Source of the DNA: Diplonema japonicum
Lineage: Eukaryota; Protista; Euglenozoa: Diplonemea
DNA: 64,000 nt
Assembly (NCBI GenBank): GCA_964019335.1
Contig: OZ025725.1
Span: forward strand, 248,001 to 312,000
Reading direction: 5' to 3'
The position numbers and the translations under genes were made by a program. How positions within the stretch are numbered: position 1 is the stretch's first letter; each line of letters opens with the position of its first letter. The notes below the pieces were generated by a model. It had not been told where the DNA came from and did not search any database. It saw only the letters and a program-made list of their open reading frames with translations. Below, in pieces: positions 11,121 to 18,070 of this stretch.

Positions 11121-14100
11121 ATGGCCTTCACCCTTCCGCCTCTTCCCTACCCGCTTGACGCCCTCGCCGGGCACGGGATCTCGAAGGAGCAGATCGACTT
11201 CCACTACAACAAGCACCACAAGGGGTACGTCACGAAGCTGAATGCAGCTGCCGAGAAGACCCCTGAGCTGAAGGAGAAGACCATCGAGCAGCTCATCAAG
11301 GAGAAGGCGCCTGTGTTCAACCTCGCCGCGCAGATCTGGAACCACACCTTTTACTGGAACTGCATGTATGTGGTTTTCGTTTTTTTCTTCTTTTTTTCTT
11401 TTTTTTCAAAGGGGCTGGTAATTTGGGTTGGAATTAATCAAAATAATCGCAATCAAAGATGGCTGGGGAACCTCCACGTGGTGGCCCTGGGTCCCCTCCC
11501 AAGGGGGGGAGCAAACTCCCCAGAAGGAGGCAGCATCATCAACATGGGTGCAGGTGGCGCGAATGGCGAGGTCAGTGAAGCCGGTGCAAGCGCAGAAGGT
11601 GACGGCGAAGGAATGGCCTTCTCGTCAGGTGCAGGAGGTGCAGGAGAAGTGGATGGACGAGGACGAGGACGACGACAACGACAGCAGCAGCAGCAGCACG
11701 ATCGTACTGCGAGCCATCTGGTGGAGAGCCGCATCCGGGGAGGACGGGTGGGCGAAGGTGCAAGCGGACGCCAAGAACGAGACGGTGAAGGCACTCAAGG
11801 CGCTGGGAGTCACCCTGCGGGGGATCTCAGAGCCAAGAGGCGAGGCCTGGAAGGGACAGCTGACCAAGCTGGACCTCCTGGTCTACGTGGCGGCCAACGA
11901 AGAAGGGAAGGCGAAGCAGGCTGGTGGAGGAAGCGAGAGAAGCAGCCACCACTATGGCTGAGGACGTGGGACGTGGCGGCGGCGCGGGGGATCGGCCACC
12001 CTCACAAGCAACGGGAGGGGTCTCGGTTTGGTGCAAGACGGGAACCTGGACAGCGACGACGCCAGACACAAAGCACAGGAGGCCGGCTTGCTGGTGGGAA
12101 CAGGGGCCGGACGAAAGTTCGACCTCCACAGTGTGCCACGCGGGATCACGGGCGAGCAGGTGCAGGGCTTGCTACGGAACAACGGGTGGAAGGACGCGAC
12201 GGTCATTCGCGTCATCCCGAAGAAGGGGCGGCAACTGGCGGTGGTCCAGTCGGCAGGGCAGCCCCCGTTCGGCGAGGTGCAGGTGGGGGAGCACCGGATG
12301 GCGCTGACGGCGGCGTGGAAGCAGCAACCACTGCAAATGGTGGTGGCGAAAGGGGAAACGAGGAAGGACCCCAACGAAAACTGCGACACACGATACTCCA
12401 AGCCCGAGTTCCTCTGTTTTTACGGCAAGAACAAGGGCGAGGAGTACTGGGCGGCCGCCGACCCCGAGAAGCTGCAGGAACGGGAGCAGAAGGACGCGAC
12501 CGCGGACACGACCACAGAACAGAAGAAGAAGAAGACAAAGAAGCCGCAGAAGCAAGAACAACAACAACAACAACAACAACAACAACAACAACAACAACAA
12601 CAACAACAACAACAACAACAACAACAACAACAACAACAACAACAACAACAACAACAACAACAACAACAACAACAACAACAACAACAACAACAACAACAAC
12701 AACAACAACAGCAGCAACAGAAGGACACCACGATCAACGCAACAGAGCTAGAGCAATACAAAATGCTCGTCACGAAGTTGCAGAGCGAAGTCGACCGCCT
12801 CAAAGATGCGCTAAGGAAGGTGGCACGCAGGGCGATGGAGAACAGGGCCGCGACGACCCCAGCAGCCACGACAAGCGCTGCATCCCCGAAGCGGCAGAGG
12901 AGCGGCACTCCGGAACAGAACACGGAGACGCCGACGGCGAAGAAGAAGCCTGCGACGGCGGCGGCGGCAGGTGCAGTGTCCCCGAAAAAGACAAACACGA
13001 ACACGAACACGAACAAGGCAGCGTCACCGAAGCGACAGAGGAGCCAGACTCCCTCACCCTCTCCGTCGCCGAAGAAGCCCGACCCCAGCAGCCCCGGCCA
13101 CAGGAAGCCAACAACCTCGTCGGAAGGGAAGCTGCAAGGCAAGGAGAAGAAGAAGCAGAAGGTGCATGTCCATGCTTGGTCTGCGACCTACCAAGCCTCA
13201 CAGGGTCAATGCGGGTCATGTCATGTCCAGCTGAAAGGCAGGAGGGCGAGGGTGTGCGCCATGGAGAACTGCAGGCGGGAACAATGCGTGAGCTGCATTG
13301 GAAACCTCCCCAACTGAAAACGGGGAGGCGGAAACCGGGGTCAGAGGAGGAAGAGGACTTCGCGAGGCTCACGGCGCAGGGGATACATCCGAACCCTGGG
13401 CCCAACATGTACGTGTCGACAGTGAACGTGGCCTCCCTACGCAACCAAATAGAGGAGGTTACGACGAAGCTGGACGTCGACGTGATCTGCACGCAGGAGA
13501 CGGCGCTGACCTTAGCTGGGCAGCAGGAGATGGAGCGGGAGCTCGGGAAGAAGACGAAGAAGAAGTGGAAGCCGATGTGGGGACCGCCGCAGCCGGGAAG
13601 GAAGGTGGAGGGAATCGCTTCGAACTGGGTAGCGCAGAGGGGAGGACTGGCAACCCTAATCCGAGAACCCTGGACAGCATTGCCAGGTTCCCTGGACACC
13701 AACGACCAATCTGAAGAACAACGCAGGAGGTGGCTGCACACTCAGGTCGCAATCGATGGCAAACGCAGATGGCTACATATCATATCGATATACTGCCCGG
13801 CAGGAACAGGACGTGAAGAGACCGCAAAGAGGGAGACCCTCCTCCACTACATCCTGCGGAAGAAGGCGAAGGAGCTCGGCAATGTGCCAATACTCGTCGT
13901 TGGCGACTTCAACACCGACGAGGCAAGATCCCCGGAACTGCGGAAGGCACTGCAGGCAGGATGGGCGGACACAGCGGACCTATGCGCAAAATGGAGAGGG
14001 AAACAACCTGATCCAACGTTTGTACGGGAGAACTGCGCCACGCGGATCGACAGGATACTGGCAAGTCCGGAGGCAGTACCGGCCATCACCGGATGCCAAG

Positions 14101-17100: not shown

Positions 17101-18070
17101 CGTCGGACAAGGACTTCGGCAAGCTACCGGCAGGGGATGTCCTACGGGAGTACACGAAGGAGGTGCTGAGGTGGATGCGGCAACTGCGCTGGTATGCAGG
17201 CAGCAGGAACACGTCAGTGTCGACGGTGGAGCTGGCACTGGATTTCGAGAACGTGACCGGGAAGACCCTTGGAGGGAAGCTGGGGGATCTCGCAGAAGTA
17301 CAGCAGAAAGCGAGGAGATTGCATGGACTGATGAAGAAGATCTGGCACACATGGGAGCTAGGGAGGGTACTGAAGAAGGTGAAAGGAAGGAGGGCCTTCC
17401 CAGCTGAGCCGAGCACAAGGGTGCACACACTACGATCCATCGGGAGGACAAAGGCGGTGATCGGATGGAACAGGAGGGCGATATTTGCATCACCGAAGAC
17501 CAAGCATGACCTAGAGGCGTTGAAAGGACAATGGGCGAGAGAACGAAGAGAAAGAGCGGCCAGGCTGGGGAGAAGGCCGGCAAGACCACCAAAGGAGGAG
17601 AAACCGCTGCTGAAAGGGGATAGGTGCAGGTAGAAGATGAGAACAAGGGGGCGTCTCACAAAGACTTCCTTTAACTCATATATATATATATTTTTTTTTT
17701 TTTTTTTTTTTTTTTTTTTTGCAACCACCCCTCCCTCAGGTCGCCCAACGGTGGTGGTGCTCCCACCGGTGCCATTGCTGAGGCCATCAACAAGGACTTC
17801 GGCAGCTTTGACAAGATGAAGGAGGAGTTCTCCGCGGCTGCTGCTGGCCACTTCGGGAGCGGCTGGGCGTGGCTGGTGAAGGATGGCGACAAGCTGAAGG
17901 TGCACCAGACACACGATGCTGGGTGCCCCCTTGCCGATGGCCTGAAGCCCATCCTCACCTGTGACGTGTGGGAGCACGCCTTCTACATCGACTACAGGAA
18001 CGACAAGGCCGCCTACGTGCAGAGCTTCTGGAAGACCGTCAACTGGGACTTCGTCAACAGCCAGCTCTGA
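11121..18070 (+). CDS. sodB: Iron superoxide dismutase, copy 2 (exons 11121-11365, 17740-18070; intron expanded to ~6.4 kb by a retrotransposon)
   Basis: Exons appear identical to copy 1; donor GTATGTGG and acceptor CCCTCAG are intact. Confidence 0.92.
11459..13317 (+). CDS. Retrotransposon ORF1 (RRM-like region, Q54 tract, C-terminal Cys-rich finger); 5' part interrupted
   Basis: ORFs 11428-11961 and 12028-13317 share a frame, split by TGA at 11959. Candidate ATG 11459 needs a slip in a G-run; the alternative start is 11563. C-terminus CGSC...CAMENC....CVSC. Confidence 0.65.
12559..12708 (+). repeat. (CAA)50 perfect trinucleotide repeat encoding polyglutamine in ORF1
   Basis: Directly visible; CAG CAG CAA CAG follows. 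Confidence 0.95.
13356..13403 (+). other. 2A-like (StopGo) peptide DFARLTAQGIHPNPG|P
   Basis: NPGP core with LTxxGIxPNPGP context directly before the APE domain. Confidence 0.75.
13401..17633 (+). CDS. Retrotransposon ORF2: APE endonuclease + reverse transcriptase + CCHC finger; no RNase H recognised
   Basis: APE motifs NVASL, QET, YCP, GDFN, RIDRI and TDH. RT motifs RPI, QYGFR, DFAKCFD, QGCPIS and YADD. CDIC..EHALWEC. No stops. Confidence 0.95.
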   Translation, partial: PNMYVSTVNVASLRNQIEEVTTKLDVDVICTQETALTLAGQQEMERELGKKTKKKWKPMWGPPQPGRKVEGIASNWVAQRGGLATLIREPWTALPGSLDTNDQSEEQRRRWLHTQVAIDGKRRWLHIISIYCPAGTGREETAKRETLLHYILRKKAKELGNVPILVVGDFNTDEARSPELRKALQAGWADTADLCAKWRGKQPDPTFVRENCATRIDRILASPEAVPAITGCQVNQAIKGTDHRTLTVALELDRFRMTVQRYMLPRGLETADEPTEEQGAEAVEAAGFRQYLHEGNITKAFETLSRCTEDLLIDQPVGTPGRAAYVGRGKHTSTKEKEVCAPTATGTVGAATTWQARLEKLKLKTRTLQQQLEQAVEDKGLSKPTLNTIRNVNREAMALAVPSEPVPHDAVLIEDMLAAALNMEDAIAAEERKKSTEANTSRRREYLAEVAAGRETTRLVKVARGKRQSDGTRAVKEGVVLFASPGLIDSVMRKAWKTVFAKYESRPEPLYAPFKAKYSKFVQRHEMERTQLTGARLGEVLRKKSKKSAAGIDGWRMLELRKLPESVLDAWAMLFHAIEATGRWPEAMKTALVTLVPKCDDAGPLEHRPITVTSAVYRLWACARLSDILIWQEKWIHDKQYGFRTGFGTEDALLDLALDIEESILEGKPLVGVALDFAKCFDSVPQQLVLELVEDMGMDTGILRALKGMYAGMRRRFRYAAGVGEEFHTTNGILQGCPISVVLINALLAVLMKQVENDTGVRSLSYADDAYLLARLGAALQEGVDAVEAFCKQVGMKLNTRKTKTFAVNRKTPEVKVKGEELQPTRTVGVLGAKLRTDGRPQTNGDRTAEALGTLSRLGATPLSFQQKAKIISSTILPSCLYDCPFSPPKTGQMATLVKETTYALWGQKYCTRNPGTVLSVTLPGHTSHPQMTAAYRALMLLYRACKKDDKLWTRCDAIAKRYSGKKIPLGPVGIMMERWLPQIKLSWAQLKDTHALEKEPYKHYIRDRLRRAEAQEIMIKRSTMGGMEAAAAAETNALWRKLVVTDPIAARDVRRIISGAVFYINPRGWRTDTVEHIPMAEGEEDEDEDEAEDEQEEEEEKGQDTEKWLIAEARKQEAKQAKPTTAHCDICGQEQQLPNMLEHALWECEKAKEVQQREEHEGMTRRGLEPCTKLHGILPRGAGKDVRERLEGTQRYLLAVVGERDAALQAKRQEVYHTHQWLEITQGQEHPVPSDKDFGKLPAGDVLREYTKEVLRWMRQLRWYAGSRNTSVSTVELALDFENVTGKTLGGKLGDLAEVQQKARRLHGLMKKIWHTWELGRVLKKVKGRRAFPAEPSTRVHTLRSIGRTKAVIGWNRRAIFASPKTKHDLEALKGQWARERRERAARLGRRPARPPKEEKPLLKGDRCR

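Follow-up and report, generated by a model that had tools for sequence, protein, structure and literature searches.

T tracts as insertion sites of a LINE family in the diplonemid Diplonema japonicum

LINE copies in the SOD and RBX1 introns

We analysed a stretch of 64,000 nt of Diplonema japonicum DNA (the window; assembly GCA_964019335.1, contig OZ025725.1, positions 248,001 to 312,000 of the forward strand) that carries two Fe/Mn-SOD genes. The single intron of the second (SOD copy 2, exons 11121-11365 and 17741-18067) contains a full-length long interspersed nuclear element (LINE) of 6.3 kb on the + strand (11407-17690), with T8 immediately upstream and CTCA(TA)6 followed by T30 downstream. 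Our concern here is the relationship of this element and its relatives to the T tracts that adjoin them. It is probable, in our assessment, that the element represents a young and active family (family 1) within a diplonemid-specific clade of LINEs with an apurinic/apyrimidinic-type endonuclease (APE) and a reverse transcriptase (RT), that the family is target-specific for (T)n tracts, and that the T's at its borders are target DNA.

The element begins with the head (C)AAAGGGGCTGGTAATTTGGG and has one open reading frame (ORF) of about 2029 amino acids (11544-17633, including its TAG stop). A Gly/Arg-rich N-terminal part with a run of 51 Thr, encoded by (ACC)n at 12558-12710, is followed by a 2A-like motif GIHPNPGP (13380-13403) just upstream of the endonuclease domain, the APE domain itself (13419-14129; Pfam PF03372, E 4.5e-12, residues 654-890), an RT domain (15213-15851; Pfam PF00078, E 1.7e-25) and a C-terminal Cys-x2-Cys...His-x4-Cys knuckle (16785-16847) whose four residues are invariant in 18 diplonemid relatives. 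Within the one ORF, the 2A-like motif marks the border between a low-complexity N-terminal part and the part with the endonuclease and RT. A short 3' untranslated region (UTR; 17634-17678), with a suggestive terminal hairpin prediction (AUGAG/CUCAU, AAGGGGG/CUUCCUU), leads to the 3' end TTTAACTCA(TA)6, of which (TA)6 (17679-17690) corresponds to a tail that varies between copies. With an RT, an upstream APE, a common 3' end, variable 5' truncation and target-site duplications (TSDs), the element is an APE-type non-LTR retrotransposon.

Among solved structures in the PDB the RT is closest to human L1 ORF2p (E 2e-21) and to R2 proteins (E 8e-19), and all close protein relatives come either from Diplonema papillatum or from EukProt transcriptomes. 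One of these, the Trinity-derived protein P0001 (1916 amino acids), shares the start Met of the element ORF and is 95-99% identical to it, and the family is therefore transcribed; P0001 has about 7 Thr at the place of the 51-Thr run. A metagenome scan returned 20 distant RT loci with 22-48% identity in unrelated organisms, and a protein cluster atlas gave only generic RT and endonuclease clusters, without taxa. Compared with P0001 the window copy is locally frame-shifted (residues 157-188 of the translation from 11460) with its frame still open. A frame is also open from the SOD ATG at 11121 through exon 1, the intron T run and the element 5' UTR into the LINE ORF (2170 codons), such that an unspliced transcript could encode a fusion of SOD exon 1 and the LINE; this continuity is probably due to chance.

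Two other LINE copies are present in the window, both truncated at the 5' end. The first (8571-10390, + strand) starts at the RT motif SLSYADD, has the end ...CCTTAAAAGAACAG with no repeat tail, and is flanked by T12 (8559-8570) and, after the end ...AAAAGAACAG, by T17 (10391-10407). The second (41507-42629, - strand) lies antisense within the A-rich intron of RBX1, belongs to a subfamily of family 1 with about 650 nt of additional 3' UTR and, read on its own strand, has T7 (42630-42636) upstream and CTCA(TA)4 plus T11 (41496-41506) downstream. The original prediction was that all three copies have T tracts on both sides of the sense strand without a poly(A) tail and that orientation follows the polarity of the tract, and both coordinates and sequence bear this out: none of the three copies has a poly(A) tail, and the antisense RBX1 copy has the T's on its own strand. 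It also noted a terminus shared by two copies, which is CTCA(TA)n-T(n) in 11407-17690 and 41507-42629. Its treatment of the three insertions as one family needs correcting, as the copy at 8571 has only about 31% amino-acid identity to family 1 and is assigned to a sister family (family 2) of the same clade.

The intron of SOD copy 1 provides the empty target site that had been predicted, T4-C-T23 (28 nt, 3557-3584, + strand), and the splice sites GTATGT and CTCAG|GT are intact and identical in both SOD copies. The filled site consists of T8, the element and T30, and the paralogues differ by a C/T change and two T's. This pair fits nicking at the C|T edge with duplication of 8 nt, the 3' run representing the whole tract of about 28-30 T; on comparison with the empty paralogue the T8 (11399-11406) would be the 5' copy of the TSD, and the T30 (17691-17720), by TSD analysis, the 3' copy together with the remaining target tract and not element-encoded.

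Element ends, T tracts and target-site duplications

To place these copies in a genomic context we searched the assembly (62.5 Mb, 132 contigs) with the last 591 nt of the element; this query has (TA)6 as its final letters and is therefore blind to whatever follows. There are 521 candidates, the 40 of them that were scored are 99-100% identical, and for this reason we regard the family as young; the terminal 22-mer has 277 occurrences. For 3' ends we used an unbiased sample of 30 genomic loci, 5' junctions were mapped in 25 family-1 copies, 7.4 kb was taken around 20 copies, and genome-wide junction counts used explicit motif patterns of the terminus, (TA)n and a T or A run.

The 3' end is ...TTTAACTCA(TA)n in each of the 30 sampled copies, n varying from 2 to 15, and none has a poly(A) tail. 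A run of T5 or longer directly follows (TA)n in 22 of them (median T8), and the next 10 nt are T-rich in 28. Runs of T are common in this genome, with those of at least 5 nt at about 5 per kb and those of at least 6 nt at about 3 per kb on each strand, and T runs could thus flank the three window copies by chance. However, TTTTT follows only 2.3-2.6% of window positions, giving a binomial P of ~1e-28 for 22 of 30, and genome-wide the terminus followed by (TA)n...TATTTTT has 359 matches, compared with four for the ...TAAAAAA version, of which three are true A-run cases in which the A's are only of TSD length. These numbers refute chance association, to which we attach next to no weight. They are also the genome-wide scoring of flanks against background by which the original prediction was to be checked, and landing in T tracts in a fixed orientation withstands it, A tracts being far from as frequent as T tracts. 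As T and A runs are about equally frequent in the genome, the polarity must be a property of the element.

The 5' junctions speak to what the T's are. Four of the 25 mapped copies are full length and 21 are cut at differing 5' points, and in 17 of the 25 at most 3 nt separate the junction from an upstream run of T4 or longer; since these upstream T's cannot derive from the element, the target itself is a T tract. Only 14 copies genome-wide keep the 5' head, and 10 of them have T6 or longer within 5 nt upstream. At several sites the duplicated sequence is not pure T. One copy (L023) reads CCCC-TTTTTGT|element...(TA)3|TTTTTGT-TTGTCG, and other impure TSDs are present on both sides of L024 (TTTCTT), L025 (TTTATT), L049 (TTTTTTTTC) and L050 (TTATTT). 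All five begin flush with the end of (TA)n with no added T, and five impure TSDs of at least 6 nt exceed the 1.03 expected from 2000 flank permutations (P ~0.001). The TSD is 6-9 bp in all 14 copies with either a bounded 5' run or an impure TSD, and it starts with T in 24 of 25 copies; in those that allow a judgement, its start coincides with the 5' edge of the tract. Bounded 5' runs that are shorter than the 3' run measure 6-8 nt, and in L039 and L038 the 5' and 3' runs are T7/T7 and T7/T8. Where it can be judged the first nick appears to lie mostly at the 5' edge of the tract, and to be internal in long tracts (5' runs of 15-30 T, seven copies). Because T's abut the variable 5' truncation points as well as the 3' ends, and because impure TSDs follow (TA)n directly, the T run is best read as target DNA (the TSD and the rest of the tract) and (TA)n as the element's own tail. 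The earlier description of the element as ending in T is not upheld by these junctions.

A different account of the same association is that insertion is random or merely AT-biased, and that copies survive only in harmless T-rich spacers. The genome is rich in homopolymers, and the strong orientation bias described below shows that some filter acts, possibly selection. Nonetheless, copies that are 99-100% identical have had little time for selection, the junctions lie exactly at or in the T run and that run supplies the TSDs, other non-coding spacer sequence is far larger and equally harmless but hardly used, and the strand polarity is about 359:3. We regard survival as a most improbable source of the T-tract link.

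The base preceding the tract is C in 15 copies, G in six and A in none (n=21; background 24% A; P ~0.003), although this by-eye count mixes edge and internal nicks and is a hint only. Among the 14 full-length heads, one to five A's precede GGGGCTGG, and in six of the 10 T-flanked heads, one of which reads CGCA, the T run is separated from the A's by a C; start-site slippage and untemplated addition are both possibilities for the C and the variable A's. A spliced-leader head or trans-splice acceptor at the 5' end was considered; full copies start (C)A1-5GGGGCTGG right after the T run, without a leader. One 3' junction is unusual: after CTCA(TA)15, L033 (the same as L004) carries its own last 11 nt in reverse complement (TGAGTTAAAGG), then TTTA(TA)4TG and T15, which resembles a snap-back of the growing cDNA on the self-complementary (TA)n.

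Sister families adjoin similar tracts. The main terminus of family 2, ...AAAAGAATAG / ...CCTTAAAAGAATAG, is present 114 times genome-wide, with a unique end ...GAATAG and no repeat tail. A pure T15 follows in 40 instances, and 77 have at least 13 T in 15 nt, interrupted by C, G or A at positions that vary, such that here too the downstream T run looks like target DNA. Two further families in the fetched loci end ...CCTTTTACCTC and ...CAAAGACATC, also next to T-rich tracts. With at least three sister families abutting T tracts, targeting of these tracts is a property of the clade. Nested or adjacent insertions are seen at L043 (1180-1260, - strand) and L018 (~740-760, - strand), and L033 and L046 each hold several copies; at L043 a family-1 copy sits in the T tract directly after the 3' end of another family (...CAAAGACATC). 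Each insertion is left with a T run on either side, so LINE arrays can build up in this way.

From the anatomy of the element we infer that integration proceeds through target-primed reverse transcription (TPRT), the geometry of which would have the endonuclease nick the complementary A strand where its A run stops on the 3' side (5'-AAAAAA|S-3') to give an oligo(A) 3'-OH. The primer would end in oligo(A), for example 5'-ACAAAAA-3' at L023, a mirror image of L1, and the earlier proposal of an A-rich primer with L1 polarity reversed stands on this geometry. Reverse transcription would start on the terminal (UA)n of the RNA, with specific recognition of the 3' UTR and hairpin as in LINEs of the 'stringent' type, and register choice or slippage on (UA)n would best account for the variable number of (TA) units. 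A second nick 6-9 nt downstream on the T strand would then leave T's on both sides, with the tract regenerated beside the former downstream sequence.

It was proposed originally that a U-rich RNA 3' end, arising by uridylation, by termination in the donor T tract or by read-through, pairs with the oligo(A) primer, in which case the 3' T run would be partly copied from RNA and be a true T tail. Each donor copy does have a T tract downstream, so a read-through RNA would bear U's, and where the flanks are pure T the 3' run frequently exceeds the 5' run by 3-6 T, with possibly two extra T in L044. Moreover, the ends of families 2-4 are unique and tail-less and meet T runs precisely in more than 100 copies, and known site-specific LINEs achieve such precision at the junction when read-through target sequence pairs with the primer. 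However, the five impure TSDs directly after (TA)n, the equal runs in L039 and on both sides of L049, the near-equal runs of L038, and the A-run insertion L027, with no tail beyond its TSD, all argue against added T's. The longer 3' runs have a simpler explanation at SOD, where the empty tract is already ~28 nt and the 5' flank has 8 T, so the excess is the remainder of the tract. A U-rich end is not needed for family 1, the SOD pair being accommodated by a T8 TSD from a run of about 28-30 T, and we consider it unlikely.

Several points nevertheless tell against our interpretation of the T's as target DNA and of the tracts as specific targets. Three of the 25 copies (L040, L042 and L044) have neither a T run nor a TSD at the 5' junction, L044 is the copy that may carry two extra T, and L027 is inserted in an A run. 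Pure-T flanks leave room for a few T's of RNA or slippage origin. At SOD, a single locus, an alternative alignment with the insertion right after the C and no TSD would imply about seven added T's. Slippage on (UA)n does not explain the very precise junctions of the tail-less families 2-4, at which read-through U's may pair with the A primer. A 3' terminal hairpin is predicted both for family 1 and for a 45%-identical sister family, with weak statistics (z -0.7 and -2.05) that make it suggestive only. The nick position is one that we infer from TSDs, and the junction evidence comes from copies resident in the genome.

Contigs from public sequencing runs contain further truncated copies, several with T runs upstream. 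Near-identical words of the element 3' region are found in public runs that come from 11 studies and carry eight organism codes, among them a coral metagenome and a marine metatranscriptome, and contigs from two of these runs are ~95% identical over kilobases. The matches could come from related diplonemids, or from this organism as a contaminant or associate.

Orientation bias and genomic setting

To examine orientation we used the first 100 places listed for each of families 1 and 2. The minority orientation within a contig accounts for four of 100 family-1 places, where 5000 shuffling trials averaged 21.8 and went no lower than 14, and for four of 100 family-2 places, compared with 16.8 by shuffling. 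The two families point in the same direction in 13 of 14 shared contigs, and the exception is a strand switch along the contig. Orientation switches along contigs C1, C5, C7 and C10, resembling the strand-switch regions of directional gene clusters. In the window all ORFs of at least 550 amino acids are on the + strand, as are two of the LINE copies, and the copy is on the strand of the Pfam-identified upstream gene in eight of nine loci, or nine of 10 with SOD. In D. papillatum, co-transcription of genes in large groups has been proposed (PMC10161547).

The availability of tracts is only slightly asymmetric, with 299 T6 or longer runs and 229 A6 or longer runs on the sense strand of 88 kb of flanks (1.3:1), and therefore cannot explain a co-orientation of about 24:1. 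Either quick removal of antisense copies or coupling of integration to the direction of transcription or replication could account for it. A more elaborate version, which we put forward as tentative and on balance doubtful, is that integration is strand-specific for transcription (or replication) in addition to being homopolymer-specific. The element would enter sense-strand T tracts of directional clusters, likely the polypyrimidine tracts of cis- or trans-splicing, and nick the template A strand; a T-only TSD would regenerate the tract on both sides and preserve the host RNA processing signals, the element would be co-transcribed with the cluster, and the downstream tract might even define the 3' end of its RNA. 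If so, the tract would be not only the target but part of the element's expression system.

The original prediction regarded introns as safe sites for the element. The 5' splice motif of this species is GTATG (PMC12621601), and it is present within 100 nt on the proper side in five of 25 sites, compared with 12% of T runs generally, which rules out introns as the preferred home; they are one of several homes. That targeting of homopolymers keeps the element out of exons is trivially true.

The two SOD genes (3279-3931 and 11121-18067) lie 7.8 kb apart and have 100% identical exons and near-identical flanks, with A runs directly before the ATG and after the stop, and a T31 about 70 nt upstream of the copy 1 ATG. 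This layout is compatible with a polypyrimidine tract and AG acceptor followed by an A-rich 5' UTR. The RBX1 intron (~41491-42715) is about 105 nt without its LINE, mostly A runs, and is bracketed by a 9-nt direct repeat CAGGTGTGT at 41482-41496 and 42707-42721. At one end of the intron the repeat serves as the 5' splice site (CAG|GTGTGT), at the other as the 3' splice site together with the exon start (CAG|GTGTGT), a pattern expected of an intron born by duplication or by insertion with a TSD.

Comparison with other LINEs

Family 1 resembles mammalian L1 in having APE and RT in one protein, frequent 5' truncation, short TSDs, and an endonuclease acting at the edge of an A:T homopolymer tract that supplies the primer. 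However, L1 nicks 5'-TTTT/AA and oligo(T) primes on poly(A), such that A's follow the element, whereas here the A strand would be nicked, T's follow, and the tail is (TA)n with no poly(A). The TSDs of L1-clade LINEs are 7-18 bp and mostly 13-15 bp (PMC6007223), longer than the 6-9 bp seen here; they begin with A's, as those of family 1 do not, and the strong gene-relative orientation bias is also unlike L1. LINEs of the stringent type such as the I factor and UnaL2 share a variable short 3' repeat in place of poly(A), a conserved 3' motif and a possible stem-loop. Their tails are (TAA)n and (TGTAA)n, respectively, and slippage is the accepted explanation for the UnaL2 repeat (PMC3747384), although a homopolymer target is not reported as required for these elements, and families 2-4 here lack a repeat tail.

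LINEs specific for simple repeats are known, including the (TG)n-specific Togen and others specific for microsatellites or telomere repeats (PMC4640811). As here, nearly all copies lie in one simple repeat in one orientation, which is usually read as a safe-site strategy, but the (T)n target is a mononucleotide and, instead of forming a dedicated array, is extremely abundant. The majority of LINEs that carry a restriction-like endonuclease are specific for a target (PMC4640811); the clade described here has an APE, a different class of endonuclease. RTE-clade LINEs and plant Au-like short interspersed nuclear elements (SINEs) are T-ended with TSDs that start with T, and their protein has been proposed to bind a T stretch (PMC6007223). 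Compared by tail and TSD features, their sense strand ends in T or T-rich repeats and, as in family 1, the TSD begins with T. In those elements, however, the T stretch is about 10 nt upstream of the nick and T's are in the element tail, whereas here nick and TSD appear to lie within the tract and the T's to be target DNA.

Among Euglenozoa, the Leishmania SIDERs likewise reside in a host with same-strand gene clusters, but they are extinct and degenerate with a sense bias of about 4:1 (PMC2689281), whereas the copies here are young and co-oriented at about 24:1 within contigs. The kinetoplastid ingi/L1Tc clade has an RNase H domain and poly(A), neither of which is found in family 1, Pfam giving no RNase H domain in the element ORF. 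Mobile elements of diplonemids are essentially undescribed, with only gene-model names available (PMC10161547). In the literature searched we found neither a (T)n-specific LINE clade with T-only TSDs nor near-complete co-orientation with gene clusters. The principle is not new, as non-poly(A) tails, T-ended retroposons and microsatellite-specific LINEs are all known.

Taken as we propose, family 1 would be a natural mirror image of L1, with the same enzyme architecture, opposite tract polarity and, across the clade, (TA)n or no tail in place of poly(A), and as such a useful comparison for how APE reads A:T tracts and for the co-evolution of primer and template end. Insertions lengthen introns more than 100-fold, as in SOD and RBX1, and duplicate T tracts, which matters for gene annotation in this group. 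Diplonemid genomes would hold highly active LINEs that are site-specific for the homopolymers of spacers and introns. The orientation bias is the most promising lead, and the young, co-oriented copies make it testable, in a free-living euglenozoan, whether such a bias comes from integration or from selection.

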